The notes under the pieces are model-generated. The model did no database searches. It saw only the letters and a program-made list of their open reading frames with translations, and had not been told where the DNA came from. Positions 529-43,995 of a stretch of 64,000 nt of DNA are shown one piece after another (position 1 is the stretch's first letter; each line of letters starts with the position of its first letter). Made by a program: the position numbers and the translations under genes. Origin of the DNA: Takakia lepidozioides (taxonomy: Eukaryota > Plantae > Bryophyta). Location of the stretch: contig CM060732.1 in the NCBI GenBank assembly GCA_030704615.1, forward strand, positions 21,948,001 to 22,012,000, given 5' to 3'.

Positions 529-2763
529 CATTCCCACATTTGTAAACAAAGCTGCAAGGAATCCCCACCAGTTCTTGTTTTTCACATCAATCTCCCCTCT
601 TTCTCTGAGTATGCACAGTCTTTGTACCATTCCCCAACCCAAACTCCTTCTCCTATAACCTCTAAACCCCTTCACTTCTCTCTCTTTACTACAGCCAATG
701 TCAGTAAGGCAATCAAGAAGCTGCAAAATGGCAGAGCGGTGGACATTTCAGGACACGGTGGACACTTCAGAGTGAATTCATCAAGCATGCTGCACCTACT
801 TTAGCCCCTTTTATAGCTAACCTCTTCAATGAGGCGGTGCAACGGGGCTTTCCAACAGAGTGGACAAAGAGCATCATCCACCCACTTTTTAAGAGCGGTG
901 ACAGGCTCGCACCGACAAACTATCGTACTATCATGGTGTCCTCATTACTTGCTAAACTGTTTGGGGCAGTAGTGGCCATGGAACTGGATGATTGGGCTGA
1001 GTACTCTCGCATTCGTGCTGAGGGACAGGCTGGTTTCCGTCGAAACCAATCCACTATTGACCACATCTTCACTCTTCAAGTTATGGTGGAAAGTGCACGC
1101 TATGACAAAAGAATGGTCTATGTTTGCTTCGTGGACTTTCACAAAGCCTTTGATTCAGTTCCTCGGGACCTTCTCTTCCAACGGCTCCATAGAGTGGAAG
1201 TCCCTCCAGACATCCTTTGTGCCATCTCTTCTATGTATGAGATTGTCACTGGCATGGTCAACGTCGCTGGTGAATTCTCAGCCGAGATCCATAGCAACAT
1301 TGGAGTCAAACAGGGCTGCCCCCTTTCACCTACCCTGTTCGGGATCTACATTGACGCCTTGGAGAATTACATATCAAGAAACCATGGGGTTGGGGTCCCA
1401 TTGGATGGGGGACCAACCCAATCAGATCTCCTCTATGCTGATGATGTTGCCCTTTTGGCACAATCCCCGGTCTTTCTGCAACGCCATCTCAAAATTTTGG
1501 AACAGTTCTGCAAAGACTATGGGATGCAGGTCAATCTTAGCAAGACCAAGATCATGGTCTTCAATGGCCAGGCTGATCGTAGATTCATCTTCAACCAGCA
1601 GGAAATTGAGATTGTGAAATCATATCGGTATCTAGGTCTGGTTATCCACTCCCCCAAGTTTCACTTTGCAGCCACTGCCTTGGACAGGTTGACTAAAGGT
1701 AAGGCGGCCTCCGTCCGCCTTCAGGCCAAATGCAAGCAAATACATCTGCGGCATCCCCCGACCAAAAAGTGGCTGTTTGACACCGTCGTCAGCCCTGCTA
1801 CCATCTATGGTTGTGAGTTCTGGGCACTTGGTGTCCCTGTCTCCTGGTGGGAAAAGAATTTGGAACCATTACAGTCATCTTTTCTCCAAGCAATGCTTGG
1901 CGCCAGGAGCACAACTCCATCTCAGATCCTAGGTGCAGAGTTCGCATGTGTACCATTGCAATCCAAGGCCCTCTTCAGGCTTACAATCTTTCTCCATAGA
2001 TTGCAGGCCCTTCCACCCAAAGGGCTAGTGGCAAGGGCCCTCACAACATCTATGAGGCTCAAAGCTGCAGGTTTCAGGAACTCCTGGTATGCTCGAGTGG
2101 ACAGTTTATTTCAACGTAACGGACTTTCTACTGCTTTCCTATTACCAATGAACCCAGATGAGGTGGACATCACATCCAGACATGACCGCAACAGACGCAT
2201 TCGGAGAGAGCTTATGGAATTACATGTCAAGAGAACTTGGATGCTACCCAATCTCACGACAAAGCTCCACTTCTATCGAGAGACATTCTTGGTGCTCCGC
2301 GATGATAGAATCTTGAGACCAAATTACCTTTCAGCACCCTTATCTCCTTCCCTCTTGAGGGCATTGGGGCGGTTCAGGGTGGGTTCCCACAACCTACGGA
2401 TAGAGACTGGCAGATGGGAAAACCTGCAACGGGAGGACCGCCTATGTCCAGCTTGCATAGGGCGCAGCAAGGAAATTGAAACTGAAGAACACTTCTTCTT
2501 CTACTGCCCTCTATACTACGAGATCCGTGGGAGATTTCACTGTTTATTCAGTGGAACCCAAACTCTCACTGATGTCTTTCACTATGAGGATCAAAAATGC
2601 GTGGCAGCCTACCTACACTAGGCCTTCACCCTTAGACAATCGCTAGAACATTAATTGTGGTTTCTGGATTTGTTCCTCTCTCATGTTTTCTTCCATTTTG
2701 TCCCATAAGCTCTACGAGCTTTCCGCGGACGTTATAAAGCACCATTTCATTTCATTTCATTTC
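529..2763 (+). mobile_element. 5'-truncated LINE (RTE/RTEX/L2-like) with reverse transcriptase ORF 837-2621
   Basis: RT motifs NYRTI, QAGFR, FVDFHKAFDSV, GVKQGCPLSPTLF, LLYADD and YRYLG. C-terminal CxxC...HFFFYCPLY knuckle. (CATTT)n tail at 2743-2763. Frameshift near 750-775 and a premature TAG at 2619, 11 codons before the likely end. Possible TSD CTGTTCT at 522 and 2763. Confidence 0.92.
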
Positions 2764-3354: not shown

Positions 3355-6300
3355 ATGGCAGTGCGATCCGCAGCTATGTTGCGCCGGGAGGTGGAGGCCA
3401 TACACAAGGCCTTGTGTTGTCCTTGTGGTGAACCGGCGGAAGTCCTCACAGCATGCAGAAAACTAAGCGGCCAGGCTGTGGAGCGGAAATGGGAATCCAT
3501 TTTGGCAATGCTGGATCAGAGGTCCTTGAAAGTCATGCCCATGACGCCTCCCCATGCTGCAGGGAAACTGGAGAAAGGTAACTCTGGTATATATATAGGT
3601 TTTTGGGTGAAGCCAAGGAGCATCCAGACTGCACATTGCCGCTGGCCCAACCCAGCAGCAATCACACTCACTTAATTGAAGAAGTTTATTTTGTGGTCAC
3701 ACATGTGCTTCATATTGCTGTGGTCACTCTGGAGCAGTGCATAGCTACCACTGCCAGCCACACTGAGTGATGGATACAGGTCAGAAATAGAGATGTACCT
3801 TGCCATTGACTGTTCTCTGCGAAATATCATGGCGATGATGTACTCCTGAGGGGATAGTTCCCGTGCTTTACCAGCCTTCTCGAAGCCATCTGAAATTTCT
3901 ACCCAGTGTAGGTTGGAGAGCTTAGCGAAAAGACTTCTCATCGCGTACAACCAACAAGAAAGTGGAAACGGGGAATTGACTGTCGATGTGAGGCCTCGTA
4001 TAGAAATCATTTTTTTGCAAATTCAATCACTGTTGCTCTAGCCCCCAATCGGACATAGATGTGAGGCATGTGGACGTAACTGCACTGCCAGGCAAACTTT
4101 GCTTGAGAAAGGGCAGAGAATTAGTTTTATAGAAAGCTACTCTAGCATTCCTCATGAATACTCAAGAAATATGGAGCTTCTAAAGATCGATGTCTTGATT
4201 GGTGCTTGCATACAGGCCAAGCAAGAAGCATAGAACGGTGGTGGCATGAGTTCATGGCAGATCCTCCACAGTGGTTGGGAAGAACCTCTTATAAGGTGAG
4301 GCTATCTGTACTGTTACTAGTTAGTTTTGTATCCTAAGTTAGAAAATGAGTTGATGTGTTTGTTTCTGGGTGAGCTGGTATAATGTAGTTCTCTGGAGTG
4401 GACCATGATAACGGCAGCATTGAAGTTGGTTTTTTCAAAGTTGTCGCTTGGTGTTTGAAGGCAGTTGTAGCCTGGTCTATAGGCTGTGGTTATACCAATA
4501 GCTCCTCAGCTGCAAGGTAGTGGTTTTCACAGATTAGTCCAAGATCACCAAACTTGAGACATAAGCATACAGTGGAGGCCTTTTGGATGGAAAATTGGCT
4601 GGACCCTCCTTGGGTAAAAGCAGAGCTAACTGCAATTAATCAAGTTTCAGCACAGTCGGATGGTGGATGGATATCAGAATATGCCTATAATTCTGGTTTG
4701 AACATTGTAGCTCCATCGAAGTTTCAAGACGGGAGTGCACATTCTGGTGGGATGGCAGATTATAGTGGAAAGACAGTGTGTGTTCGAACACAGGCTGTGG
4801 AGAAACGTGAGTGGTACCCACAATTAGCTTTACGGTCAAGTTCTCATGTTATGGCAATTGGAAGCTGGCAAAGTTCTCATCTATTGCAGTTCTTGCACAC
4901 AGGTCAAATGGTGAGCATACAACAGCTTTGGCAAGACTTCTTCGCAGATCCTTCACAGGGGTGGGACAACAGGTCTGCTAAGGTCAGGTTAGATTCATTG
5001 TAATTGGCTTGTCAAGGAGGACTTGTGGCTGAAGCTGTCATGTTGTGCTCTCGATTGCATCTCCAGTTGCTTAGAAAATATATTGTTCTTTGTCTCTGGG
5101 ACGTGACAGTAGGTTGCTCAAGGTTGTTTCCTGCTGGTTGGAAGATGCTTGGTGGTTGTAGTGCAGTCTGTGCAAGTCTAGGGTTGAAGCCTCTCACTTT
5201 TGGCTTCTACAGAAAAGCCCAAGATCACCAGACTTTAGACAAATGCACAAAGGAGGTCCTCTGGAGTGAGAGTTGGTCAAATCCTCCTTGGGAGAAAGCA
5301 GAGCTTGCCGCCCTGATACAAAGTACAGCACAATCTGTTGATGTACACAATGGAGCTCCTGGGCAAAAAGATAGCGGGTATTGTTCAAGGCGGCCAACTC
5401 AAACAGATAGAATGGGTACTGTCGGTTCTCTAAGTGTATGACTTCTGTAGTTTGTTTATTAATATGTACCAAGGCACTTGTGCTCATGTCAGATGTTTTC
5501 TGCAGTATCCAGGAACTTTTGGATACATACTGGGGTCCTAGTGCAAAGATCCTAACAATAGTCATGCAGCACGGCAGGGTTGAACCAGGGAGAAATGTTT
5601 TTTCGACATCAGACTGGCAGCACCTCCTCAATCACCACTGCTTCTGAACTGGAATCAAGAGAGGGTCTCACAGTGAAATCTACGGGCACTTGTCAGGATG
5701 TGAGGACACTTTGTAAGGCAGGACAAATAAAAGAGGCACTGCACGTATTGAACCAGCGAGGTCTTCAGGCAGACTACAGCACTTATGTCTGTCTCTTGAA
5801 GGAATGTATTAACATGAAAGGCCTAGCAGAGGGAAAGAAGGTGCATGCCCACATAATGGAAAGTGGGTTCAAGCCAACCACGTTTCTCCTCAACACTCTT
5901 GTCAACATGTATGCCAAGTGCGGGAGCGTAATGGATGCACGCCAAGTGTTTGACCGAATGCCAGTACGAGATAAGTTTACTTGGAATATGATGATTGCAG
6001 GATATGCCAAGCATGGGAGTGGCAGGGAGGCTTTGGAGATCTATGAGCAAATGCAGCGGGAAGGGGGAATGCCTGACAGGGTCACATTCACTTCTACTCT
6101 CAATGTGTGTGCTAGCATAGGAGCCCTGCAAAAGGGGAAAGACATCCATGCCGACATCATTAAGGCTGGACTTCCGCCAGATATCATTCTGGAAACTGCC
6201 CTTGCTGACATGTATGCCAAATGTGGTCGTGTAAATGAAGCACGTCAAGTGTTCGACAATATGGTTCAACAAGATGTGGTAGCGTGGAATGCCATGATTG

Positions 6301-8108
6301 CAGGATATGCTCAGCATGGGTGTGGTAGGGAGGCTGTCAAGATCTACGAGAAAATGCAACACCAAGGGGTGATGCCCAACAGGGTGACATTCATTTGCAT
6401 TCTCAATGCATGTGCCACCATAGGAGCCCTTGCCAAGGGCATAGAGGTCCATGCTGACATTGTCAAAGCGGGAATTGTGTCATGTATTAAGTTGGAGAAT
6501 ACCCTTGTTGACATGTACGCCAAATGTGGGAGCATGAAGGGTGCGCATCAAGTTTTTGACAACATGGCTCAACGAGATGTGATCTCATGGAACACGATGG
6601 TTGCAGGATATGCCCAGCATGGGTGTGGTAGGAAGGCTTTGGATACCTATGAGCAAATGCAGAATGACGGTGTGCTGCCCGACAAGGTGACATTCGTTTG
6701 CATTCTCAATGCTTGTGCCAACATTGGAGCCCTAGAAAAGGGCAAAGAGGTCCATGCTTACATAAGCAAAAATGGAATTGTGCCAGACATCAACCTGGAG
6801 AATGCCCTTGTCGATATGTATGCCAAATGTGGAAGCATAGAGGATGCCCGTCAAGTGTTCGACAATATAGCTCAACGAGATGTGGTCTCATGGAATGCGA
6901 TGATCACAGGATATGCTCGGCATGGGTGTGGCAAGGAAGCTGTCCAGATTTATGGACAAATGGTAAGGGAAGGGGTGACACCTGACAGGGTTACATTCAT
7001 TTGCGTTCTCAATGCATGTGCCAGTGTGGGAGCCCTGGACAAGGCCAAAGCGGTTCATGCTGACATCAGCAGAAGTGGAATTGCCCCAGATATCATTCTA
7101 GAGACTGCCCTTGCTGATATGTATGCCAAATGCGGAAGCGTAGAGGATGCACGGCAAGTGTTTGACAAAATGGCTCAACGGAATGTGGTCTCATGGAACG
7201 CGATCATTGCAGGATATAGTCAGCATGGGTCTGGTAGGGAGGCCCTGAAACTGTTTGAGCAAATGAATCAGGAAGGCTTGGAGCCAGATGGTATCAGCTT
7301 TATATCTGTTCTATTTGCATGTAGCCATGCAGGCCTAGAGGATGAAGGCTGCCACTACTTCGATTCCATGATCGAGGACCATGGCCTCACACCCACAGTA
7401 GAGCACTTTGGCTGCATGGTGGACCTGCTTGGCCGGGCAGGGCGACTGGATGAGGCAGAAGACCTCATTAACAAGATGCCATTTGTAGCAGGTGCTCCGG
7501 CGTGGGGAGCGTTGCTGGCCGCCTGCAGAACTCATGGCAATATGGAGGTAGCAGAACGTGCGGCAAAATCCCTCCTCAAATGGGAGCCACAGGATGCTGG
7601 GGCTTACGTCTTGCTATCAAATATTTATGCTGCAGCTGGCAGGTGGGACGATACAGCAAAGGTGAGACAAATGATGGAGGACAGAGGTGTGAGGAAGGAG
7701 CCAGGGCGCAGCTGCATTGAGGTTGACAGCCATGTGCATACATTCATCGTAGAAGATAACCTGCATCCACAAATTGGGGAAATCCATACTGAGCTCAAGA
7801 GATTGTCTGGGCTGATGAAGGAGGCCGGGTATGTGCCTGACACACGCTTTGTATTGCATGATGTGGAGGAGGAGCAGAAGGAATTCTCTCTGTGCCACCA
7901 TAGTGAAAAGCTGGCCATTGCTTTTGGGTTCATCAGCACTCCCGATGGGACGCCCATCCACATCATCAAGAACCTTCGGGTGTGTGGTGACTGCCACACT
8001 GCTACCAAGTTCATTTCAAAGATTGTTGAGCGGCGAATTGTTATACGGGATGCCAATCGCTTTCACCACTTCCAAGATGGGGCTTGTTCTTGTGGAGATT
8101 ACTGGTAA
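3355..8108 (+). CDS. PDF(x2)-PLS-PPR-E-DYW protein (gene 1), organellar C-to-U editing factor type. Proposed exons: 3355-3577, 4216-4295, 4533-4982 (possible in-frame intron 4696-4902), 5232 (or 5213)-5377, 5570-8108
   Basis: 5580-8108 encodes 17 P/L/S motifs, E1/E2, a PG box, HSEKLA, CGDCH and terminal CSCGDYW. Upstream exons have GT-AG borders with compatible phases and match gene 2 in length (223 and 80 nt). The DYW ORF is certain; the 5' model is inferred and has a 2-nt lesion near 5241. Confidence 0.85.
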
Positions 8109-8201: not shown

Positions 8202-11200
8202 TGTTGGAATTCGACAGAGAATAGAGGTAAAAGATGAACTGATTATTGAGAACCCTCCACCCAAGAATAGGACCACAACAAGCTGTGTCCACCCTCCGAG
8301 CTCTCCCTATTTATACTCAAAGTCTAATCCAGAAATAGCTGAGATAACTATAGCATAACTCCATGCTTTTACTTGAGTTATCTCCACCTGTACAATGACT
8401 TGAGTCACTAATAACTGAAGCTAACTTTAGCTATCTTTTAGATAACCTAGGCTTATCTCTATTGTTAACTGTGACTTGTCAGCATTCCTATTATGGAAGC
8501 ATGACTTGTCATCACAGTAACTCTAGGTAGTAGTAACTTGGTCAGGAGTTGATTTCCAACACCCCCACTCAACGAGTTACCAAGTTAAGCACATGACTAC
8601 TCCCATTAAGCTTCGAAAGCGTTCAAGCTTTTCAACACTAAGCCTTTTTGTTAGTATGTCTGCAACCATGTTGTTGGTATTGCAATATACAAGCTTGACA
8701 ACTCCAGCTTCAGTCTTCTCTTGTATCAAATGATGATGAATCTCAATATGTTTTGTGCGAGCATGAAACATTGGATTCTTTGAGAGAGCAATACACCCTT
8801 GGTTGTCATCATATATGACCATGGTATCTCTCTGTGGACAACCAATACTAGATAGGAATAATGATAACCATAATGCTTGCCTTGTAGTTTGAGATGTAGC
8901 CATATATTCTGCCTCAGTCGAGGACATAACAATTGTAGATTGGTTCTTGTTGCTCCATTCGTTAGTATAAAAACATAGCCAGATGTAGAGTGGCGATCAT
9001 CAACATTACCAGCTCAATCTGCATCACAATAGCCATATAGCTCTGTGCTTTTGCAAGCATTATGTGAGATACCATATGAACCCACTTGATCCAACTGAAC
9101 ATTATCATTGTTCTTTCTCAAGCACAAATCATAATCCAGTGTGCCTCTCAAATAACAGAAAATCCGCTTTACTGCAACCCAATGGAGTTGCCCAGGGTTA
9201 GCCACATATTGGCTGACAACCCCCACTGCTTGTGCAATATCTGGCCTAGTACAAACCATTGCATACATGAGACTTCCCACTACACTCTGATAGGGAACAT
9301 CTCTCATTGTCTCCAAGTCTGTAGCACTCTTAGGACTCATCTCCTTTGAGAGTTTGTAATTTGGGACAAACATGGTATTTACCGGCATACTTTCAATCAT
9401 ACCAAAGCGCCTTAAGATGTCTTCAAGATACTTACGCTGGTTCAGGTAAATCGCTCGGTCTTGTCGAATACGAGTTACCGATATCCCCAAGCAGTACTGG
9501 ATCTCTTTCAGATCCACCATCTCAAATTTCATTGAGACATCGTTTTTTGTCTTTTTCAACAAAGCCTGATCAACACATGATCACAGAATCTCTTTCAGAT
9601 CCACCATCTCAAACCTCTTTGAGATATCACTTTGTCTTTTCAACAAAGACTGATCATTAACACATGATCACATGTTTCCTTTCAGATCCACCATCTCAAA
9701 CTTCATTGAGATATCGCTTTGTCTTTTTCAACAAAGCCTGATCAACACATGATCACAAGATCTCTTTCAGATCCACCATCTCAAACCTCTTTGAGATATC
9801 ACTTTGTCTTTTCAACAAAGACTGATCATTAACACATGATCACAAGATCTCTTTCAGATCCACCATCTCAAACCTCTTTGAGATATCACTTCGTCTTTTC
9901 AACAAAGACTGATCATTAACACATGATCACATGATCTCTTTCAGATCCACCATCTCAAACCTCTTTGAGATATCACTTTGTCTTTGTTTCAATAAAGTCA
10001 ATTTGTCACAACCACTATCTCAATCTCATTTGAGATATTGACACTCTGTATGTGTTTCAACAGAGTCAAGTCATTAGAGACCAAAATCAGATCATCAACG
10101 TACAGTGTTATGATCACAAAAGAGTTTCCATGAGTCCTCTTATAGTAAACACTATAATCAGCAGAGCTCATCTCAAACTCTTCAGCCATGAAATATGCAT
10201 CAATCTTAGCATTCCATGCCCTAGGGGATTGCTTCAAACCATACAAGGACTTGAGGAGTTTACACACCATCCTTTCCTTCCCTTTTACAGCAAATCCCTC
10301 CGGCTGGTCCATGTATATTTCTTCCATAAGATCTCCATTGAGAAAGGCTGTACATATATCCATCTGCTGTACCTCAAGATTTTCAACAGCAGCAAACGCT
10401 AGAATCACTCGAATTGACTCCATCCGTGCAACAGGGGAGAAGGTTTCATTGTAATCAATACCTTCAATTTGCGAAAAACCCCTTTGCAACCAAACGCGCT
10501 TTGTACCTTGCTACAGAACCATCTACATTGTACTTAATCTTGGAAATCCATTTGCAGCAAACAGACTACCGTCCAGATGGAAGTTGAACAAGACTCCAAG
10601 TCTTATTATCCTGAAGAGACTTAAACTCAGAGCCATAGTTTTCTTCCAGTGTGAAGAATTCCCACTCCTCATTGCATCTGACACATTTTGAGGTTTATCA
10701 CTGTCAACGAAATATGCAGAAGATACCTTTGAGGGTTTTTCAATCATAGTAGATTGTACCTCCTCCATTTGAACCTCAACTATCTCTTCAACAATCTTCT
10801 CTTCCATTTTATCTTATGTGTTAGAGCCAAGTTTTTTTTTTCATGGTCCAAACTTGGAACTACTATTTCCTGATGAAAGTTCCTGGACTCATTGAATATC
10901 ACATCACGACTGATGATCACATACTTGCTCTCAGGGTTATACAACTTATACCCTTTGGTTTATTCACAATAACTAATGAAGATACAATTGATTGCTTTTG
11001 CATCCAATTTCTTCCTTACTTCTTTTGGAACATGGGCAAATGCAACACACCCAAAGACGCGCAAATGATCAACTGAAGGTTTCTCACCCTTCCAAACCTC
11101 TTCAGGTGTCTTTGTAGAGATTGCCTTAGTAGGAAGTCGATTCTGGAGGTATGCTGCATCAGTTGCCACTACTTCTGCCCAGAAACGGTGGTCCAACCTC

Positions 11201-12948
11201 ATGTGGTGCAACATACACCTCACACTCTCAACAAGTGTTCGATTCTTTCTCTCTACAACTCCATTCTGTTCTGGCGTATATGGTGTGGTTGATTGTTTCA
11301 CAATACCATTCTCCCTGCAGAACTGGTTAAAGTTCTTTGAGATGTACTCACCACCACCATCACACCGAAGAGATTTGATCTTTTCTCCAGTTTGATTCTC
11401 CACCAAAGCTTTGAATGCCTTGAGCATATCAAGAACTCCAAACTTGTTTTGCATCGTGTAGAGAAATGTTTTCCTGGAAAAATCATCAATGAAGGTCAAG
11501 AAATACTTTGCACCTCCATGAGATTTAGTTGACATAGGACCGCATAGATCTGTATGAACCAGCTCAAAAACCTTATTTGTTCGAGAACCTCCATCATTTG
11601 GAAATGAATTTGCGATGGTGTTTACCGTACACATATCCGTCACAAAAACTCAAGATTCGATCTCATGTAAGATCTATGCCTTTAACCAGATTGTTAGCTG
11701 ACATGCATGCCAAACTTTGCATTGAAACATGTCCAAGTCTCTGATGCCAGAGGTCACTCTGCTTGAGCGTAGTAGTACACTCCACATGTAAAGCCTGGAC
11801 AACCCCCACTAGCTTATACAATCTTGCATCTTTCACTGCCTCAGCTATCACTTCACTGTCAAACTTCACCCAACAATGATTGGTAGAAAATTCAACCGTA
11901 AGACCTTGCTCAGTTAGCTGACTAACTGACAATAGGTTCTTTGTCAATCCAGGAACAAAGAGAACTCCTCCGATCTCCTTCGACACTCCAGATGATAATT
12001 GAAACACAACAATACATTTTCCATGGATATCAAGACTAATACTGCTCTCTCCAAGATACACCTTGTGTCCCACAGAGAGTTCTTTGAAGGTTGAGAATGC
12101 TTCCTTCTAGAACGTCATGTGCTGAGATGCCCTTGAATCAATGAACCATGTATCTCTGCAACTCATTTCTTCGCAAAAAATTGTTGCTCAAGAGTCAACC
12201 TTGCAGCTATGATCTCTCCATCTTCAGGCTGTAGTTGAACTGGTGCAACCGCTTCTCCTGATGTGATCTCCCACAGATCTTTCTCATGAAGAATGAACTC
12301 CATCTTAATCTTCCATGTATGAAAATTGTGATTATCTAACTTATCCACTCGGGTATGATCAGCAGAAGGTGCCATGATGTTAGTTTGATGTTTTGCCAAC
12401 TAAACACCCTCAAACTTTCAGATCTAACTCCAAACACTCAAGCTTTCAGATCTGACACCAAGCACTCAACTCCAAGAACTCAAGCTTTCAGATCTAAACC
12501 CAAGCACTCAAGCCTATTGGTTGTAAATCAAATACTCATCTCCTTCTATCTCTCAAACAGAACCTTGCTCTGATACCATGTTGGAATTCGACAGAGAATA
12601 GAGGTAAAATATGAACTAATTAGTGAGAACTCTCCATCCAACCATAGGACCACAACAAGCTGTGTCCACCCTCCGAGCTCTCCCTATTTATACTCAAAGT
12701 CTAATCCAGAAATAGCTGAAGATAACTATAGCATAACTCTATGCTTTTACTTAAGTTATCTCCACCTGTTATTCTAGTACAATGACTTGAGTCACTAATA
12801 ACTGAAGCTAACTTTAGTTATCTTTTAACTAACCGAGGCTTATCTCTATTGTTAACTGTGACTTGTCAGCACTCCTATTATGGAAGCCTAACTTGTCATC
12901 ACAGTAACTCTAGGTAGTAGTAACTTGGTCAGGAGTTGATTTCCAACA
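8202..12948 (-). mobile_element. Ty1/Copia LTR retrotransposon, degenerate, with a gag deletion
   Basis: LTRs at 8202-8561 and 12579-12948 (TG...CA). 5-bp TSD GAAAA on both sides. PBS TGGTATCAGAGC (tRNA-iMet) at 12567-12578 and PPT next to 8562. Domain order gag-N (KLDNHNFHTWK), protease, LWHQRLGH, integrase (VHTDLCGP, NGVVERKNRT), RT (LYVDD), RNase H (RTKHIEI). Confidence 0.97.
9500..9995. repeat. Six tandem ~85-88 bp units interrupting the Copia RT
   Basis: Unit ATCTCTTTCAGATCCACCATCTCAAA...CAACAAAGACTGATCATTAACACATGATCAC starts near 9501, 9588, 9676, 9760, 9847 and 9934. Confidence 0.9.
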
Positions 12949-13503: not shown

Positions 13504-14391
13504 GAGGGACAGAGGCCTCAAAACTTTACCTTCCGTTCTCACTCAGTCGTAAGTTCTCCTTATCAAAGATATAATATTAATAATGTTTTTTTAAAGTAAA
13601 GGGATAATAGATGTGGATGCAAAGTTTCTCAATTAGTCAAAATAGATGGTTTCATCCATTCATTGTACACGTGTAAGCATAGTCAAGGCGCCGCGTGCAA
13701 ACTAAATATTCTAACAATCTGATTACTAAGCAAATTCTACGACTAAATTCTTGCGGATAACTGGCAGACTGCGTAACTAATCCAGGGTGTGCAGGATTAG
13801 GGTTTCAGGCGGAAATAGGGTCGTTTTCCATGCACATCTATACCCGCAGCTCCCCGGCCACAAATGCGTTGTGAGGAAGACGAGCAGAGGTCTGATCATA
13901 CGCAGTGCCCGTCAATGCCCTGATCACCTTGCTTGCTTTCCCTGAAGCTGCAGGAGCTTTCATCACAATGATTAGGCCTCTCTTCGTCTCTCTGTGTTGA
14001 ATCCCGCGGAGGTTCGCTGTGGTGTGCAAGCTGGGTTGAAATTGTGCACAAACACATCAGTATTTGTTGATTCTTTCTGTCTCCTTCTACTGTGATTTCC
14101 ACGGTTGCGGTTCACAAGCGTCATTTATCTTGTGGGCCTTAGTTTGTCGTTGGAAAGAGGCTTGGGCAAGGCTGTGCGACGGTTGTGGATTTAATCTGTG
14201 AGCTTCTCTTTGGTGGTTGCAAGTCGTCGTGTTATGAGGCTAATCCTGGTCTGAATCTGAGAGGCAGAGCGAGGCTGTGAAAAATTCTGCTGGCTTGCGT
14301 CGGAAGGAAGATTGAAGGCACTAGACAACAGCCTTCGGCACAATGTGTGATTGAAAACGAGTCCAAGTCTCGAAGAACGAGAGGGAGAGTG

Positions 14392-15408
14392 ATGGGAGAC
14401 CTAGAGAGTAAGGGTGAACTCAAGGGAAGGAATGCTGGCCATGGTGCGTATAATCTTCAACCGTCACCCCCGCATCTGCCCCCGCCATATCGACGAAAAG
14501 AGAGGGAGCGCAGGCATATATCATGGCTAGTACCAGTGTTTGTGGTGGCAAACATTGCCGTTTTCATCGTCACCATGTATGTGAACAATTGTCCTAAGCA
14601 CATCCAGGCCCCGCATAAATGTGTGCTCAGTTCGTGGAGAAGGATGTCTTTTCAGCCTTTCAGCGAGAATCCTATGCTAGGACCCTCCTCTCGGACCCTC
14701 CAAAGGATGGGGGGCTTGACGGCATTTCTGGTAACGCATCGTGGCGAAGGATGGCGACTAATTTCCTGCATTTGGCTACATGCTGGTGTCTTCCATCTCC
14801 TTGTCAATATGCTAGCTCTCATCTTCATCGGCCTGCGCCTCGAGAATGAATTTGGAGCTCCTAAAATTGGCCTGCTTTACCTTGTCTCGGGGTTCGGCGG
14901 CAGCTTACTCTCTGCGTTATTCATTGTCAATGAGATTTCTGTTGGAGCTTCGGGTGCCCTTTTCGGTCTCTTGGGGGCAACTGTCTCGGAGCTTCTTATC
15001 AACTGGAGCATATATGCAAACAAATGTGTGGCCCTCTCCACATTGGTTTTGCTTGTTGCGATCAATTTAGCCTTTGGGTTGATGCCCCATGTTGATAATT
15101 TCGCTCACATTGGTGGATTCCTCGCTGGTTTCTTACTTGGTTTTCTGCTTCTAATTCGCCCTCAGTATGGGTGGATTAGCCCCAAAGATCTTCCACTTGG
15201 AATCGAGTTGCCCGTGCAATCCAAGTACAAGGTTTATCAATTTGTCCTATTAGTTTTGGCTGCCATACTTTTGGTTGGTGGTTACACAGGGGCGATTGTA
15301 GCTCTATTCATGGGTGTTGATGCCAACAAGAAATGCTCGTGGTGCCACTACTTGAGCTGTGTTCCAACTTCCAGGTGGCATTGTGATGATATTCCACAGA
15401 GAAACTGA
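14392..15408 (+). CDS. Rhomboid-like intramembrane serine protease (RBL1/RBL2 type), single exon, 338 aa
   Basis: ENPMLGPS, GWRLISCIWLHAG, catalytic SVGASGALFG and DNFAHIGG, C-terminal CSWCHYLSCVPT. First ATG at 14392. Confidence 0.95.
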   Translation: MGDLESKGELKGRNAGHGAYNLQPSPPHLPPPYRRKERERRHISWLVPVFVVANIAVFIVTMYVNNCPKHIQAPHKCVLSSWRRMSFQPFSENPMLGPSSRTLQRMGGLTAFLVTHRGEGWRLISCIWLHAGVFHLLVNMLALIFIGLRLENEFGAPKIGLLYLVSGFGGSLLSALFIVNEISVGASGALFGLLGATVSELLINWSIYANKCVALSTLVLLVAINLAFGLMPHVDNFAHIGGFLAGFLLGFLLLIRPQYGWISPKDLPLGIELPVQSKYKVYQFVLLVLAAILLVGGYTGAIVALFMGVDANKKCSWCHYLSCVPTSRWHCDDIPQRN

Positions 15409-17358
15409 GAGTTGGTGCCTCATTGTGGGGTCCTCAATACAGATCAGCATGTCGATGTTGCAGATTTAATGCCTAAACCAGAGTGGGCATTGCCACAGTC
15501 CTCCAAGGGACTTATATGAACGATGAGAAGATTGTTACTATTTGCCTGTTTCCAGCTCACTGGAGATTATCCCATTGAAGAGCAAAAAACAGCCACACAA
15601 ACCCTGCTTGAGGGGGTATTGCAAGGAAGGGCCCAGGCAGATCAGGGTCATTCAAAAGTGACAGTGGCATGTGTACAGAATGGTTCCTTGTGCAGATTCT
15701 TGGGATGTCACAACCATCGATGTTGGAGAATCCCCTTGACACAGGCCAGTTGGCTGCACATGATCAAAGGTTATTTATGGTAGGAAGTCTCTTCCTCCCC
15801 AGACAGTGAATAATGGGTGGCGTCAAAGTCAAAAGTACATAAAAAATGTGTTTTGTCTTTTGACACGCTCTTTCAGCACCATGATATGTAAGAGTAGAGA
15901 ATGAATAAAGCATGAGGGTTGCTCTTCATGCTGTGTTGTCTCTTTGGTTGTGGGGGACCTGTATGTTGGACAGATCTTAAGGTGGTTTGCATCCAGGCAT
16001 TGAATTCACTTTTGGACTGCAATTGAGCACCATCTTGGAATCTCGTCGTGGCTTCAGTTTCTTTTCCAAAATTCAAGTTAGGATATTTGAATGTCGTTTT
16101 AATGGACCCTCACCTGGTCACATCAATGCCTTAATTGTTTCTTGTCCTGGCTGCTGTATGGAATGAGACCCACAAAGGTTCAGCCTGTAATTTTTCCTAA
16201 TTTTATCAGTGCTTTCCAGGTCCTGCGCCTTGGATCTTATGCCCCTTATGCCAGTGTATGTAGAGCTGAAAATTATAGTTCTATGAAAAGTCCCCTCTAT
16301 TCAAGGAATGGGTGGCTTAAATCTCTCCACAGAGGGATGCAGTCAGTGAAACAATTTGTTGCCCACTACTTCCGGAATCACTAGGAAGGCTGATTTGTGG
16401 CCCATTTCTTCCAGAAAATTGTGAGGTGCAGGTGGTTGATGTGGATTTATCAGTCACCTTGTTGACTTGATGATGATGCCACATTAAGGGCTTTCAGTGA
16501 TCTCGGTGTCATCCTGAGTTCTTGCATACTGCCACCTGCAACTGAATAATCGAGCACCGGTGTGGGAGCTCATCACCAAGGGTCTCATTTCCCACAACTT
16601 CCTCATAACTGCAACCAACACACGTTTGAGAGAAGCAGACAGTAATCATAATCCATACCATTGGTGAAATAACTGTCCCTTCAACTGTTGGGCAATCTCT
16701 ACTAGTGTTTCGGAAGCTGCCTTCGTTGGCAGGCTTCAAGTTGCGCATTGTGCTCCAAAGTGTACTATCTTGTACACATCTCACACAGCAATAACTTCTA
16801 GAACTACCTACGCTCTCGTAATCCAATTCTTTCTTCCGTTCTTCTTTGGAGGACTAGCAGTTGACAAATGCACTCATTCGAATGTGTGTGTGGTCGTCTG
16901 GTCCTTACGTCCCTACTATACCAGATCCCGTCCGACGTCTGAAGTTGAGCGGATTTGGCTCTCTCTCTCTCACACAGGTTTCCACACGGAGGCTTTGCAT
17001 TCCGTGATGCCGAACATTAAATTGCATCCTTGAGGGATCAACAGCCCACGATGTTTATCCCTTGAAATGGCAGGTCCAAAATGCTCAATTTTCCGCTCAT
17101 CGAACACAGATGAATTCCACCAAACTTTAGTACCTATGAATTTCCCCGCAGTCCGCTGGTGAGCGAGAGAGATGTAGTCTTGTGGCTCTAGCAAGCACGA
17201 TATTTCGAATGGAATGCTGGTGTGGGAAGGGGAGCTCGAAACTCACAAGATGACTCGTTGTGGGTTTTGTGTACTCACTTTTCGCCTTCGCAATTTGCCG
17301 ATCATTCTATCAGCACCATTTGCGATTTTACATTTCCCAGCTTCTCACGGGCATCAGG

Positions 17359-20300
17359 ATGGCAGCTTGCTCCAACGTTCTCTTCAGTGCGGAAGGAGAG
17401 GCCATACCCAAGTCCCTTTGTTCTCCTTGCGCTGAGAGGGCGGAAAGCCTCACATCATGCAACGGACTGTCGGGCCAAGGTGTGGAGGTGAAATGGGACT
17501 CGAGCTCGGCAAAGTCGGGCCCCCGAACCTTGCGAGTGATAGCTACGGTGCGTCCCAAGCTTGCAGGGACACCGGATAAAGGTACAGACGTGGAACTATT
17601 TGTGCACTTATTGGCTTTCTAGATTTGGAGCAAGCTCCACATTATCCTTGACCCATCTATCAGAAACTGCACCGATCTTGATGTTAAACAGGACTGTAGT
17701 TGAAGTGTAATTCTCCTGTCTTGAACTCCTTCAGAGTTAATTGATATGGTAACAACGTCTGATGCACGTATCTTTTTTCAATGCATGCACAATGAACACA
17801 TACAAACAGATTTGAGGTTTGAGAGAGCTCAAAGTCTCACTCCCTTGGTCTCTTGCCCTTAGTAGCATTTCCTGCAACGAAAGAAGGTGAAGTGGGCCTC
17901 ACATGGATCCATCGCAGCCAATCAACAAGCCAACAGGTTAGTAATCCCTATGGACCCCAGGCTTAAACCACTTCACATTTGTTATCAGTGTTATCCCTGT
18001 AGCAGGTCATACTTGCAAAGAGAGGAGGTAAAGGAGGTCCTTTAAGGCATTTCAGTCAACAATAGCAACTTAGCATTACCTCTCTCAGCCCATGCTCTAG
18101 AGGGAGTGGGGGTGGTCTTATGTCAGTAAGCACCCATTACCCAAAGGAAGATGTTACTAGAATCAAGTCCTCAAGCAATGGGACACAGAGGCCTTTGGTC
18201 TGCAAAAGTATTCATAGATTCAGAGTAGAGCTAGTCAAGTCCATGTAAGTAAGCATGACAGTAAGCACCCATTCCCAAAAGGGAACTGTTACTAGACCAA
18301 GTACTCAAGCAAGGGCACACATAGAAGCCCTTGGTTTGTAAAAGCATTCCTAGATTCAGAGTAGAGCTTAGTCGAGTCCATGTAAGCTCCTCATAGTGTC
18401 AACTCTCTTTGTCTTGCCAGCACTTCAAAGTGTTAAGGGGAGTCTATATGGATACCTAGCTTGTAGCCATAGTTCGGCAGTATGATAGTCAGCTCCTTCA
18501 GCTCTTGCCTGCTCCTCTACCAAATGGGAAGAGTGGCCAGGGTCTCTAGGGCAGCTGCTTTTAGACCTAGGGAGAACCCTAAAGAGTCATCCCGTTCTCC
18601 ATTTTTCCGTTCCGCTCTAGGCAAAAATTCTGAACAGAATAACGGGACCAGGTAATTCTTGATACAAAGAACTTAGCCACATTCAAGGAGAGACGAGTCC
18701 TCAGGCCTCTCATTTTCAGGTTTCCTAATTATGCCACAAGGCCTTGGCTACAGTAGACCAGCCAAGAGAGTGATGTGCTGACTGTTGTTAGGAACTTAGC
18801 CACGTTCAAGGAAAAAGAGAGAGAGAGAGAGAGTGAGAGAGAGAATGTACTCATGAGACTTTGTTTGCCGTAGCCTAGAGAGAATGTACTCATTAGACAT
18901 TGTTTGCTGTAGCCTTGTGGCCATTTACCCCGCGCTCAGTCTCAGTGGGACAGAAACTACCTTTGTCAGGGGCTGACGCCAGTAGTATGACTTACCTTGG
19001 AACAGACAATTAATCTGAGTCTCCAGATATCCTCTAGAAATCCCTTCACACATGTGCTGTCCGTGGTTTGCCCAATAACTAGACCCCAAAAAGGCCTGGG
19101 CTTTTGGCTCAGCCTCGAGACTTTCAAAGTTGGTAAACAGAGGTTCAGGCACAATTCCCTTGATGGATTTGAAGAGGGCGTCTCTCTCGTGAGAGTACCC
19201 AGGACAATGAATCAGAAAATTAATATTGTCTTCAGGTTGCCCAGACAACAGGCAATCGCAATCCCTCTTTCCTTTCTGCATCTGTTTGCTGTTCAAAGGT
19301 AGCTTCCCTTCCCACCCCGTAGCCTAGAGAGAGAGAGAGAGAGAGATGGATAATGCTAGCATTCCCAACAAGGCCAGGTTAAGTAGGAGCTGCCAAGGCC
19401 CCTTAAGCACTAGCACTTCTCATAGAGACACAGGTGATTAGAAGCTGGCAAAGTAGTCATGTTCTTGCAGTTCCTGCATGCAGGTCAAGCACTCATTAGA
19501 GAACGGCTTTGGCAGGAGTTCTTCTCAGATCCTACACAGTGGTGGGACAACAGATTTGATAAGGTGAGGCTATTGTTATTCTGACATGAAAGAGTTTGTC
19601 AAGGAGAGCTTGTTACTGTTTTTATTGTCTCCAGTTGCATAATTGTATGACTAATTTGCTCTTTAGAATAAAAGAAAGTGTAAGTGGTTCTACTGTTGCA
19701 TCACAGTTACTCAAAGTTGTTCCTGTCGAAGATTCTTGGATCTTTGTTAGTTGTAGCCTGGTCTATGAGAGGCAGTTGTTTAGCCCTATAGCTGCTCAGC
19801 TCCACTGGTGGTTTTCACAGAAAGGTCCAAAATCACCAGACTTCAGACATAAGTGCACAAAGGAGGTCCTTTGGATTGACAGTTGGTCGAACCCCTCTTG
19901 GGTGAAGGCAGAGCTAGCTGCCATGATACAAAGTCCAGCGCCATGTGGTAATGTAAGGACATTGTGTATGACAGGACAACTGAAAGAGGCCCTCCATATT
20001 TTGAACCACCAAGGCACTTTGGTAGACAATCATACTTATATCTGTCTCTTGCGGGAGTGCATCAACAGGCATGGCCTAGAAGAAGGAAAGCAGGTGCATG
20101 CCCACATTATCCAAAGTGGATTCAGGCCAAACATTCGTCTATTCAACACGCTTATCAACATGTATGCCAAGTGCGGGAGTGTGGTGGATGCACGCACAGT
20201 GTTTGACGAAATGCCTGAACGAAGTGTGTATACATGGACTAAAATGATAGCAGGATATGCAAAGCATGGGTGTGGTAGGGAGGCTTTCATAATCTATCAG

Positions 20301-21242
20301 CAAATGATACAGGATGGGTTGAGACCCAACAACGTCACATTCAGTTGCGTTCTCAGAGCATGTGGCATCCTAGGAGACCTTGGAAAGGCCAAAGAGGTCC
20401 ATGGTGACATCATCAAGGCTGAAATTACACCAGATATCATTCTGGAGACTGCCCTTGCTGATATGTATGCCAAATGCGGAAGCATGACAGATGCACGGCA
20501 AGTGTTTGACAATATGGCTCAACGAAATGTGGTCTCATGGAGTGCAATGATCGCAGGATATGCTGAGCATGGGTATGGTCCCGAGGCTTTTGAGACCTAT
20601 GAGCAAATGATACTGGAAGGGGTGATGCCCAACAAGGTTACATTCATTGCTGTTCTCAATGCGTGCACCACCATGGCATCCCTCAAAAAGGGCAAAGAGG
20701 TTCATGCTAGCATCATCAGAGCCGGGATTCTTTCCAATATCATTCTGGAGACTTCACTTGTCGACATGTACGCTAAATGTGGGAGCATGAAGGATGCGCA
20801 TCAGGTCTTTGACAATATGGCTAAGCGAGATGTGGTCTCATTTAGTGCAATGATTGCAGGATATGCTCAGCATGGGTTTGGTAGGGAGGCTTTCGAGATA
20901 TATGAGCAAATGCTCCGGGAAGGGGTGACACCCAACAAGGTCTCCTTCACTTGCATTCTCAAGGTCTGTGCCAGCTTGGCAGACCTGGAAAAGGGCAAAG
21001 AGACACATGAAGACATCAACAGAGGTGGGATTGTGCAAGATATCATTCTGCAAACTGCCCTCGTCGACATGTATGCCAAATGTGGGAGCATGAAGGATGC
21101 ACGTCAAGTGTTCGACAATATGGCTGAAAGAGACTCCGTTTCATGGAGTGCGATCATCACTGGATATGGTCAGCATGGGTGTGGTAGGGAGGCTTTCGAG
21201 ATCTATGAGGAAATGATAAAGGAAGGAGTGACGCTGGACTAA
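17359..21242 (+). CDS. PDF-PLS-PPR protein (gene 2), truncated by a premature TAA, ~574 aa. Exons 17359-17581, 19484-19563, 19821-21242
   Basis: Exon 1 is homologous to gene 1 exon 1 (223 nt, phase 1). Spliced exons 2+3 give a complete PDF motif in frame with about 12 P/L/S motifs. Confidence 0.8.
18124..18387. repeat. ~130-bp tandem duplication in gene 2 intron 1
   Basis: CAGTAAGCACCCATT...AGATTCAGAGTAGAGCT...GTCCATGTAAG occurs twice (18124 and 18259). Confidence 0.8.
18884..19316 (-). mobile_element. 5'-truncated LINE in a (GA)n microsatellite, with a 16-bp TSD
   Basis: Encodes a LINE C-terminal knuckle (ED..NFLIHCPGYSHERDALF). TSD CCGTAGCCTAGAGAGA at 18868-18883 and 19317-19332. Confidence 0.8.
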
Positions 21243-22254
21243 GTCACATCCATTAGCGTTCTCAGTGTGTGTGCCAGCCTGGCTGCCCTGGAAAAGGGAA
21301 ACAGATCCATGCAGACATTGTAAAACTGGAATTGTTTCAAATATAAATTTGGAGAATTCCCTTGTTTTGATGTTTCCCAAATGCGGGAGCATGAAGGATG
21401 CGCGGCAAGTGTTTGATAACATGATCGAACAAAATTTGGTGTCATGGAGTTTGATGACTGCAGGATGTTGTAAAGAGGCCTTGCAACTGCATGAACAAAT
21501 GCTAAAGGAAGGCGTGAAGCCGAACATTTTAACCTTTATATATGCTTATGTAGTATTGTGGAGCTGGTGGAGGAAGGCTGTGACTTCTTTGGTTCCGTGA
21601 GTCCAGACCATGCCCTGACTCCTACACTGAAGCATTTTGGCTGCATGGTTGACCACCTTGCTCATGCAGGGCGATTGGATGAAGCAGAGGACTTAATTAA
21701 AATTATGCCAATTGAACCAGATGCTGTGGTATTGGGGGCCTTGCTTGTTGCCTGTAGAATCCATGCCAAGGTGGAGGTGGCAGAACATGTGGCAATATCC
21801 CTTCTGAAGCAGGATCCACAAGATGCTGCAACTTACTACCAAACGGCAATGCTGCTGCTGGCAGGTGGGATGATACAGCAACTGTGAGCAATATGATGCA
21901 GGAGAGGTGTCAGAAAGGAGCTGGGGGGTGCAGCTGCGTTGAGGTGGATAACCAGGTGCTGTGCAGTTGAGGGAGGCAGGGTATGTGCCTGACACACCCT
22001 TGGTGTTGCATGACATGGAGGAACGAAAATAAACTTCTCTTAGCTACCACAGTGAGAAGCTGGCCATTGCTTTTGGGCTCATCAGCACACCCCCAGGGAT
22101 GCCTCTCCAAGTCATGAAGAATTTATACGCGGTGACTGCCACGCAGCCACCAAGTTCATCTCAAATATTGTTTGGGTGACCAAATTTTGTGCAGGGTGCC
22201 AACTGCTTTCACCATTTTCAAGATGGAGTTTGTTCTTCTGGGGATCCTTGGTGA
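21243..22254 (+). pseudogene. Decayed 3' part of gene 2 (remaining PPR motifs, E and DYW)
   Basis: Frameshifted fragments [41 protein letters not shown] and terminal GDPW-stop. Confidence 0.9.
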
Positions 22255-41438: not shown

Positions 41439-43995
41439 TCACCAATAGTCTGCACAAGAACACACCCAGCCATCAAAGTGGTGAAAGCGATTGGCATCTT
41501 GTACAACAATTGCTGAGCCAACAATCTTGGAGATGAACTTGGTGGCGGTATGGCAGTGACCACACACCCGAAGATTTTTGATGACACGTCCCAAGGGGCG
41601 TGCTGATCAGCCCAAAAGCAATGGCCAGCTTCTCACTGTGGTAGCAAAGAGTACATGGCTGCATGCGGAGAGAACAGTAACACATATGAAGGTGATATTG
41701 TCTAGCTTCAAGCCTTCCTTTTGCATTCCTTCAAATAGTTGCAGGGCCTCCCTATGACAACCATGCTGGGCATATCCTGCAATCATCACATTCCAGGAAC
41801 CACAGTTCGCTCAGCCATACTTTCGAACATTGCCTTTGCATCTTCAATGCTGCCACATTTGGCATACATGTCCAGGAGGGTATTGTTCAGAATGACATCT
41901 GGTACAATCCCAGCTTTAATGATGTCACCATAGACCTTCCTACCCTTTTCCAGGGCTGCCAGGCCCGCACACGCATTGCAAACACAAACAAATGTGACCC
42001 GGTTGGGCTTCACACCTTCTTGCATCATTTGCTCATAAGTCTCCAAAGCCTCCATCCCACACCCATGCTGCACATATCCTGCAATCATCGAACTCCAGGA
42101 CACTACATCTCATTCAGCCATATTGTCAAACTCTCTCCCTTTGCACCTCTGATGTTGCTGCATTTGGCATACATGTCCACAAGGGTATTGTTCAGAATCA
42201 GATCTGGTACGATTCCAGCTTTGATGATGTCGTCATGGACCTCTTTGTCTTTTTCCAGTGCTGACAGGCTCGCGCATGCATTGCAAATGCAAGTGAATGT
42301 GACCCGGTTGGGCTTCACCCCTTCCTGCATCATTTGCTCATAGGTCTCCAAAGCCTCCAGCTCATATCCATGTTGGGCATATCCTGCAATCATTATATTC
42401 CAGGACACTACATCCCGTTCAGCCCATATTCTCGAACACTCCCTTTGCATCTCCGATGCTGCCACATTTGGCATACATGTCCATGAGGGCAGTGTTCAGA
42501 ATAACATCTGATACAATTCCAGCTTTGATAATGTCACCATGGACCTCTTTGCCCTTTTCCAGGGCTGTCAGGCTCACACATGCATTGCAAATACAAACAA
42601 ATGTGGCCCGGTTGGGCTTCACCCTTCCTGCATCATTTGCTCATAGGTCTCCAAAGCCTCCATGCCACACCCATGCTGCACATATCCTACAATCATCGCA
42701 TTCCAGGACACCACATCTCGTTCAGTCATATTTTTGAACACTCCCTTTGCATCTTCGATGCTGCCACATTTGGCATACATGTCCACGAGGGTAGTGTTCA
42801 GAATGACATCTGGTACAAGTCCAGCTTTGATTACATCACCATGGACCTCTTTGCCCTTTTCCAGGGCTGCCAGGCTCACACACCCATTGCAGACACACAC
42901 AAATGTGATCCGGTTGGGCTTCACTCCTTCCTGCATCATTTGCTCATAGGTCTCCAAAGCCTCTATGCCACACCCATGCCTGGCATATCCTGCGATTATT
43001 GCATTCCAGGACACCACATCCTATGCAGCCATATTGTCGAACACCCCCTTTGCATCTTTGATGCTGCCGCATTTGTCATACATTCCCATGAGGGTTTTGT
43101 TCAGAATGACACCTGGTACAATTCCAGCTTTGATGATGTCACCATGGATCTCTTTGCCATTTTCCAGGGCTGCCAGGCTTGCACATGCATTGCAAACGCA
43201 AACGAATGTGACCCGGTTGGGCTTCACCCCTTCCTGCATCATTTGCTCATATGTCTCCAAGGCATTCTTACCACACCCATACTTGGTAAATCCTACCATC
43301 ATTGTATTCCATGTGAACAAACCTCGTTCAGGCATTTTGTTGAACACTTGGTGTGCAGCCATGATGCTCCCGCATTGAACATACATGTTCACAAGGGTGT
43401 TCTGTAGAAAAACATTTGGTTTGAATCCACTTTGGGTAATGTGAGAGTGCACCTGCTTTCCCATTTCCAGGCCTTTCATCTTGACGCACGCATGCAAGAG
43501 ACAGACATAAGTATCTGTACCTGCTGAAATGCTTCCTTGGTTCAAAATTTGGAGAGCCTCTTTCAGTTTCCCTGCCTCACATAGTGTCCTCATATACCCG
43601 GAATTTCCAGAAGAGGTCCTGTGGACTCCCTCTCTTGGTCCTCTTTTGGAGGCTGTGGTCATTGTGAGAGTGCCTGATTTTATCAATTGTGCCCCTGCTG
43701 CTGCTTGCAGTTGACCATCTACTCATGCAGGTTTCTTGTAGCTATCAATAAGACGGCCTCCCAAAACCAAAGACCCTCCCAAGTACCTTGTAAACCCAAG
43801 AAAAACCCTTGCGCAATGCAATTTCATGGCCTGTTTAGGAACAACAACCTATGATACAGACAGGGACAGCCACTTTTGCAGAACAGAAAACCTTCTTCAC
43901 ATCATGTAAGAAGAAAGAGAGGTCCTAGGGGTAAACCCTCTAAACCTTGATATGTAGGTTGTCCCACCATTGTGAAGGATAAATATGCTCACCTT
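41439..43995 (-). pseudogene. PDF-PLS-PPR-DYW pseudogene (gene 3)
   Basis: About six PLS triplets with stops and frameshifts. ACSH joins directly to CYHSEKLA (S2/E deleted) and the gene ends CSCADYW-TGA at 41439. PDF remnants at 43946-43985 and 43700-43790. Confidence 0.88.

Follow-up and report, generated by a model that had tools for sequence, protein, structure and literature searches.

PPR-DYW proteins are the enzymes of C-to-U editing in plant organelles and the basis of programmable RNA editors, and their known accessory parts comprise the E and DYW domains as well as helpers that act in trans. In editing factors of the PLS class, such as PPR56 and PPR65 of Physcomitrium, a PLS array is followed by the E and DYW domains (PMC6397227, PMC10482289). 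Other PPR proteins combine the PPR tract with a second nucleic-acid-related domain, i.e. PPR4-RRM, PPR-SMR, PRORP-NYN, and OTP51-LAGLIDADG (PMC9459714). The OSB proteins contain a central SSB-like OB-fold domain with one or more PDF motifs on its C-terminal side; the motif was reported to suffice for the binding of single-stranded DNA (ssDNA), which was described for AtOSB1 and AtOSB2 (PMC4166229, PMC6963530). Here we describe gene 2, a locus of Takakia lepidozioides (Bryophyta) in which a PDF module of the OSB type precedes a PLS-type PPR array. It is located on the forward strand of a stretch of 64,000 nucleotides, called the window in the following (assembly GCA_030704615.1, contig CM060732.1, positions 21,948,001 to 22,012,000), and all positions given below are counted from the first letter of the window. 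The region 17359-22254 probably represents a transcribed but decaying paralogue of a family that consists of a leader, at least one PDF module, and a PLS-PPR-E-DYW organellar RNA-editing protein.

The exon coordinates and the splice model of gene 2 (Table 1) agree to the base with the sequence and with the list of open reading frames (ORFs). The splice model that had been put forward in a sequence-only reading of the stretch, i.e. 17359-17581 joined to 19484-19563 and further to 19821, was borne out, with in-frame joins, GT..AG introns, and exact coordinates. Exon 1 is the N-terminal leader; its product is 47% identical to that of exon 1 of gene 1, a paralogue in the same window, and it matched no Pfam family, SSB included. 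Exon 2 completes the codon that is split after exon 1 and encodes ..RERLWQEFFSDPTQWWDNRFDK, and the first half of the PDF module within it reads ..LWQEFFSDPTQWWDNRFDK. Exon 3 begins directly behind CACAG, reads KGPKSPDFRHKCTKEVLWIDSWSNPSWVKAELAAM.., and is open up to the TAA codon. It unites the second half of the module and the PPR array in one intronless ORF, confirming the proposed fusion of a PDF module to a PLS-PPR array. A Pfam analysis of 19821-21241 gave values of 1.1e-69 for PPR_2 and 3e-67 for PPR, and the tandem succession of P, L, and S motifs places the array in the PLS class. A tblastn comparison with the array of gene 1 revealed 61% identity over 485 aligned residues.

The identity of the module was analyzed with each exon of gene 2 separately. 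A phmmer search with the 41 residues encoded by 19821-19943 against 1.84 billion representative proteins yielded 229 matches at E≤0.001. The matched proteins are mostly 250-530 residues long, with one to five matched stretches close to the C-terminus. A Pfam scan of ten of them identified SSB above the Pfam cut-off in six, upstream of the matched stretches, and below the cut-off in two more. With a local OB-fold profile, the OSB-type OB fold was found in 51 among the best 150 matches. One OB-fold match with a single module is KAL2653607.1 of Riccia fluitans (E 1.7e-07, 64% identity).

We generated a PDF profile from 75 complete modules, which were taken exclusively from OB-fold proteins. Exon 2 of gene 2 corresponds to positions 8-29 of this profile (32.3 bits), and the start of exon 3 corresponds to positions 31-63 (48.6 bits). 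The match of the second half is partly circular, because the exon 3 peptide had collected the proteins of the profile; the match of the first half is independent, exon 2 having had no role in collecting them. When the six frames of the window were scanned with the profile, significant matches were confined to 4218-5315 (gene 1) and 19498-19922 (gene 2, with the exon 2 match at 19498-19566), and a weak match was found at 43978-43946 (gene 3). Gene 2 has retained each of the 14 residues that are invariant, or almost so, in an alignment of 71 modules, and it also displays the signature of the module (W..F..P..WWDNR..K..P.PDFKHK....LW......P.WV, roughly 50-60 residues). The window contains three instances of the DNA pattern that encodes WWDNR, compared to an expected value of 0.16, and each of them is directly upstream of a PPR gene, so that the occurrence is not due to chance.

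Three further searches did not yield matches. There is no Pfam model for PDF, and the exon peptides of gene 2 gave noise alone in Pfam; a word-indexed search with region 1-45 of exon 3 returned no candidate, a negative that carries no weight given the length and word limits of that search; and the second half of the module had no match among the PDB sequences. The scores obtained with the OB-fold-derived profile, the OB-fold proteins among the phmmer matches, and the common intron position (see below) corroborate the OSB-type identity that had been assigned to the motif. The module of gene 2 and the PDF motif of the OSB proteins are genuinely homologous.

The similarity to OSB genes includes the exon-intron structure. 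The OSB gene of Riccia fluitans has a phase-0 GT..AG intron within the PDF module, at WWDNRVNK/KNPKAPDF (the slash marks the intron), and gene 2 has the identical boundary, again in phase 0 and with GT..AG (..WWDNRFDK/KGPKSPDF..). It had been claimed that the motif is split by an intron and proposed that the position be compared with OSB genes; intron 2 does split the motif, and site and phase are the same in the OSB gene of Riccia fluitans. The same boundary is present in the annotated PDF-PPR genes O6H91_21G032400 of Diphasiastrum complanatum and M758_3G008300 of Ceratodon purpureus. An intron at the OSB position implies that the module was moved or duplicated as genomic DNA and not as a processed copy. 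PDF thus behaves as a two-exon genomic cassette that is mobile and not confined to OSB genes. In gene 1, the cassette, made up of exons of 80 nt and 274 nt, begins and ends in phase 1, and tandem copies therefore remain in frame. The cassette of gene 2 can be aligned with cassette B of gene 1 including the intron, with 67.7% identity over 532 nt.

Features shared with OSB are thus a module of roughly 60 residues in which W, P, WWDNR, K, PDF, HK, LW, and P-WV are conserved alike, the phase-0 intron within it, and the tandem repetition of modules. In contrast to OSB genes, the gene 2 locus lacks an OB-fold/SSB-like domain, and its module is N-terminal to a PPR array instead of C-terminal to an OB fold. 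An OB-fold profile did not detect any instance in the six frames of the whole window (best E 2.4).

The combination of PDF and PPR is also present in other plants. Several of the long phmmer matches are PPR proteins. When the module of one such protein was used in a region-limited search, 62 PDF+PPR clusters of Diphasiastrum were revealed, with one to three modules each. A DYW-type end is present in 16 of the 60 additional Diphasiastrum PDF+PPR clusters from this search. The homologues of the gene 1 PPR frame include 17 more module carriers, among them the Ceratodon protein P0315, which contains PDF, PPR, E, and DYW. PDF+PPR members were also found in Sphagnum magellanicum, Riccia sorocarpa, and Adiantum capillus-veneris. 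The database labels of these proteins are “hypothetical” or plain PPR. The proposal that the module is a family trait is thus supported by PDF+PPR(+DYW) proteins of a lycophyte, mosses, a liverwort, and a fern, and the co-occurrence of PDF, PLS, and DYW outside of the window, which had been suggested as a check, was found in the Diphasiastrum clusters and in P0315. None of the Ginkgo and Cryptomeria matches among the gene 1 PPR homologues, which are a sample and not a census, has a PDF module.

In trees of the modules, the label “PPR-linked” requires five changes, compared to 28.6 with shuffled labels, showing strong clustering. The supported branches force at least two changes of the PPR link, but the trees still allow for a single clade (p-AU 0.305). 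The PPR-linked modules of fern, moss, and liverwort are nearest to the PPR-linked modules of the lycophyte. It is possible that a PPR gene acquired the module only once, prior to the divergence of bryophytes and vascular plants.

Four proteins from these searches have additional characteristics. KAL3675360.1 (P0144) of Riccia sorocarpa, a marchantiid liverwort, is a PDF+PPR protein of 458 residues without a DYW end. Marchantiid liverworts are regarded as being devoid of RNA editing in their organelles; should this apply, the association of PDF with PPR may be independent of editing. GAB5359246.1 (P0055) of Amorphochlora amoebiformis, a chlorarachniophyte and thus outside the green plants proper, combines a Pfam SSB match (1.9e-23) with a PDF module in the OSB architecture. 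In P0048 (1526 aa), which may be a merged gene model, a kinesin motor is joined to an OB fold and PDF modules. The OB-fold protein P0001 of Kingdonia uniflora (1160 aa) has about a dozen PDF stretches.

The claim that gene 2 encodes a protein with PDF, PPR array, and DYW was not supported. The ORF ends at 21240, the E/DYW remnants are frameshifted, the CxxCH region is disrupted, and after the TAA the remnants are spread over three frames, so that gene 2 does not qualify as a DYW editing factor. An X1 contig spans 21180-21823, which includes the stop and the first frame shifts, with one difference and no gap, and the first frame shifts are therefore not assembly errors. At best, gene 2 would encode a leader-PDF-PPR protein of 574 residues without a deaminase. 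It looks like a transcribed pseudogene that has lost its DYW end, and we infer that this copy no longer edits.

Gene 1, 3355-8108 on the forward strand, is composed of a leader exon as in gene 2, two tandem PDF cassettes, and a PPR-E-DYW frame. This frame has the characteristics of an intact editing factor (Pfam DYW_deaminase 2.2e-45, E_motif 7e-22); gene 1 and its homologues in other plants have the full PPR-E-DYW set with a DYW domain of the PG type. The best identity of the gene 1 PPR ORF to its homologues is only about 55% (Diphasiastrum, Ginkgo, and Cryptomeria). The cassettes are in a different state. Five of the 14 conserved residues are altered in cassette A, and cassette B has two bases fewer than gene 2 at the HK codons, resulting in a frameshift and a stop at 5267-5269. 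A further in-frame stop, at 5559-5561, is situated upstream of the PPR frame, so that the cassettes are only putatively linked to the PPR exon. Skipping of cassette B to the AG at 5576-5577, a weak acceptor, would be in frame. The gene 3 locus extends from 43990 to 41442 on the reverse strand, and its PPR-E-DYW part (43671-41442) is broken across three frames. A fourth PLS-PPR(-E-DYW) locus, 40836-39364 on the reverse strand, is broken in several frames. The statement that all three paralogues carry the motif or a remnant was correct: gene 1 has two cassettes, gene 2 a full module, and gene 3 a remnant. The PPR loci of the window form a cluster of paralogues in decay, and, as assembled, none of these copies encodes an intact PDF-PPR-DYW protein.

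Several other features were observed in the window. Intron 1 of gene 2 contains a multi-copy repeat (18776-19267) with a very high contig depth; (GA)n microsatellites at 18804-18850 and 19320-19358 flank multi-copy repeat sequence and were skipped as repeats in the contig analysis. An antisense ORF in this intron (18925-19296) had no match in Pfam. An intact single-exon gene for a rhomboid protease is located at 14347-15408 on the forward strand (Pfam Rhomboid 4e-40). Transposon remains are present at 837-2621 (forward strand; non-long-terminal-repeat reverse transcriptase, RVT_1 2e-33), at 9014-11643 (reverse strand; copia-type integrase, rve 4.6e-16), and at 52340-54805 (forward strand; hAT-like element, DUF659 6e-38, hAT dimerisation region 5.5e-05).

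Table 1. Positions of gene 2 and of the PDF-related features of its paralogues in the window.
Feature	Position	Strand	Characteristics
Gene 2, exon 1	17359..17581	+	ATG start; 223 nt = 74 codons + 1 base; phase 1 at its end; GT donor
Gene 2, intron 1	17582..19483	+	1.9 kb; GT..AG; repeat debris and (GA)n runs
Gene 2, exon 2	19484..19563	+	80 nt; AG acceptor; GTGAGG donor; phase 1 to phase 0
Gene 2, intron 2	19564..19820	+	257 nt; GTGAGG..CACAG; phase 0; splits PDF module between K and K
Gene 2, second half of PDF module	19821..19925	+	start of exon 3; KGPKSPDFRHKCTKEVLW...WVKAELAAM
Gene 2, PLS-type PPR array	19926..21239	+	in frame with PDF module; same exon, no intron between
Gene 2, premature TAA	21240..21242	+	inside a PPR motif
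Gene 2, decayed 3′ part	21243..22254	+	PPR, E, and DYW remnants in shifted frames
Gene 2, PPR remnant	21322-21540	+	other frame
Gene 2, E-like ORF	21558-21887	+	downstream of stop
Gene 2, DYW remnant	21967-22251	+	internal stops; HSE kept; CxxCH region frameshifted; DPW end
Gene 1, PDF cassette A	4216..4806	+	exons 4216-4295 and 4533-4806; frame open, sequence degenerate
Gene 1, PDF cassette B	4903..5415	+	exons 4903-4982 and 5213-5415; frameshift
Gene 1, PPR-E-DYW frame	5580..8108	+	intact; 842 aa
Gene 3, remnant of first PDF half	43946..43978	-	..SQWWDNLHIK; upstream of broken PPR-E-DYW gene

To address the expression of gene 2, contigs from two sequencing runs were placed on the locus at ≥90% likeness. 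X1 contigs with zero differences cover 17300-17414 and 17416-17579 of the exon 1 region, and zero-difference contigs are also present at 20870-20995. The contig depth is close to zero inside intron 2, and the joint 19563→19821 (GT..AG) was found in 4+4 contigs of the two runs. At this degree of likeness, the joint contigs may derive partly from paralogues. Joints that go back, 19879→19510 and 19912→19500, represent transcripts of paralogues with tandem modules. Taken together, gene 2 is probably transcribed.

Several points weigh against the interpretation of gene 2 as a transcribed, decaying member of an editing-factor family. Both contig runs were taken as RNA by guess only, and the contigs listed at the exon 2/exon 3 joint differ from the sequence of the gene 2 locus; the contigs accordingly demonstrate the splicing of exon 2 to exon 3 at the level of the family, whereas for gene 2 itself they are only suggestive. 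The joint of exon 1 and exon 2 was not seen among the contigs of the two runs. Of the junctions in the proposed gene model, the contigs thus support the second one, at ≥90% likeness, and not the first one. The one difference of the contig over 21180-21823 might in principle fall on the stop codon, which would not remove the changes of frame. The open frame of 1.7 kb before the stop could still give a working PLS protein without DYW. With regard to function, the OSB motif prefers ssDNA over double-stranded DNA and RNA, according to published work (PMC4166229, PMC6963530). In addition, Physcomitrium PPR56 that had been cut to 14 residues before the first PPR still edits well in E. coli (PMC10482289), so that an N-terminal region is not needed for catalysis, which speaks against the PDF module being essential for catalysis, if PPR56 carries one.

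It is unlikely that gene 2 still yields a working leader-PDF-PLS protein of 574 residues, which would recognize its RNA target and attract a trans-acting deaminase, in a manner likened to the truncated PLS/E factors of flowering plants. The unbroken 1.7 kb frame over three exons and the conservation of 14 of 14 PDF residues are compatible with such a protein, and the contigs identical to the locus suggest transcription, but the stop is inside a PPR motif and not at a domain border, and what follows is still recognizable as PPR, E, and DYW but shifted in frame, resembling a recent decay. Two neighbors in the window are likewise broken, and a trans-acting DYW partner for the lineage is not known from the data of this analysis. 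The homology of the module to the ssDNA-binding motif of OSB and the occurrence of intact PDF-PPR-DYW proteins in other plants would fit to an intact enzyme that is located on nucleoid ssDNA and edits co-transcriptionally or acts on the ssDNA itself. For gene 2, this is highly improbable: it has no intact DYW domain, the stop and the frameshifts refute an intact enzyme unless the assembly is wrong, and DYW enzymes are known as RNA deaminases (PMC6397227). Least probable of all is that the PDF exons are outside the PPR messenger, as relics of a separate OSB-like gene or of an upstream ORF preceding the PPR genes, because, in spite of the unseen exon 1/exon 2 joint and the out-of-frame cassette B of gene 1, the second half of the module shares a single intronless ORF with the PPR array, annotated proteins of four other lineages show the same contiguous order, an OB fold was found nowhere in the window, and contigs contain the GT..AG joint 19563→19821. 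Gene 2 as a decaying paralogue of the PDF-PPR-DYW family is therefore the preferred explanation.

The possible function of the module concerns the intact members of this family. The structure was predicted with AlphaFold2 for a natural contiguous module, residues 18-86 of P0119 (the longest isoform of which is P0173), using 70 homologues. The model consists of a helix, three short strands, and a helix, with a pLDDT of 92.4 and a pTM of 0.79, and the PDF module is thus confidently predicted to be an autonomous small fold. A Foldseek comparison of the predicted module with the PDB yielded no match (best E 8.4), and the best Z value of a VIA-align comparison with 48,161 chains was 4.2, to unrelated proteins. 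These structures thus contained no solved relative of the modeled fold, from which its novelty cannot be concluded.

A PPR tract is oriented with its N-terminal end toward the 5′ side of the RNA that it binds. At this end of the tract, PDF may serve intact members as an accessory binder of single-stranded nucleic acids. It could add unspecific affinity for single-stranded RNA 5′ of the recognized sequence, or it could keep the editing factor near the single-stranded organellar DNA and the nascent transcripts of the nucleoid. We propose only tentatively, and with considerable doubt, that PDF in intact members couples PPR-DYW factors to organellar ssDNA (transcription bubbles, R-loops, or intermediates of replication and recombination), so that editing in seedless plants would be nucleoid-based and co-transcriptional, or, alternatively, that PDF is a general single-stranded binder that would act also on RNA in OSB proteins. 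A deamination of DNA by PDF-PPR-DYW proteins is pure speculation, and the targeting peptide, the tethering to nucleoid ssDNA, and the co-transcriptional mode of editing that had been put forward are likewise speculative.

Compared with the PLS-class PPR-E-DYW factors in the searchable reviews and surveys, the proteins described here differ by having at least one PDF module ahead of the array, and gene 2 additionally by the destruction of E and DYW. PDF is not among the accessory domains that are listed in a review of moss PPR proteins (PMC9459714); the hosts of the listed domains are P-type, whereas the hosts of PDF are PLS/DYW proteins. A 2026 study of the evolution of OSB and PDF in 59 species never mentions PPR (PMC13393729), and in a 2026 kingdom-wide survey of editing factors, which treats domain fusions in one section, the terms OSB, PDF, and “single-stranded” are absent (PMC13386178). 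In the openly searchable literature, with subscription-only titles being outside this scope, “PDF motif” does not occur together with DYW, and WWDNR and PDFKHK do not occur in any plant paper. A prior description, which would have removed the novelty of the fusion, was thus found neither in this literature in general nor in the two surveys of 2026. The PDF-PPR(-DYW) fusion is real and old, it is well supported as a family, and it is apparently undescribed.

The presence of a conserved N-terminal module that is confidently predicted to fold suggests that the way in which editing factors handle their substrates or are localized has a so far unexplored level. The lineages concerned are those with the heaviest editing. 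The module is common to the OSB proteins of genome maintenance and to PPR genes, with dozens of the latter per lycophyte genome and further members in mosses, a liverwort, and a fern. The gene 2 locus of Takakia itself is mainly informative about the birth and death of the family, i.e. the tandem duplication of cassettes, their decay, and the loss of the DYW end.

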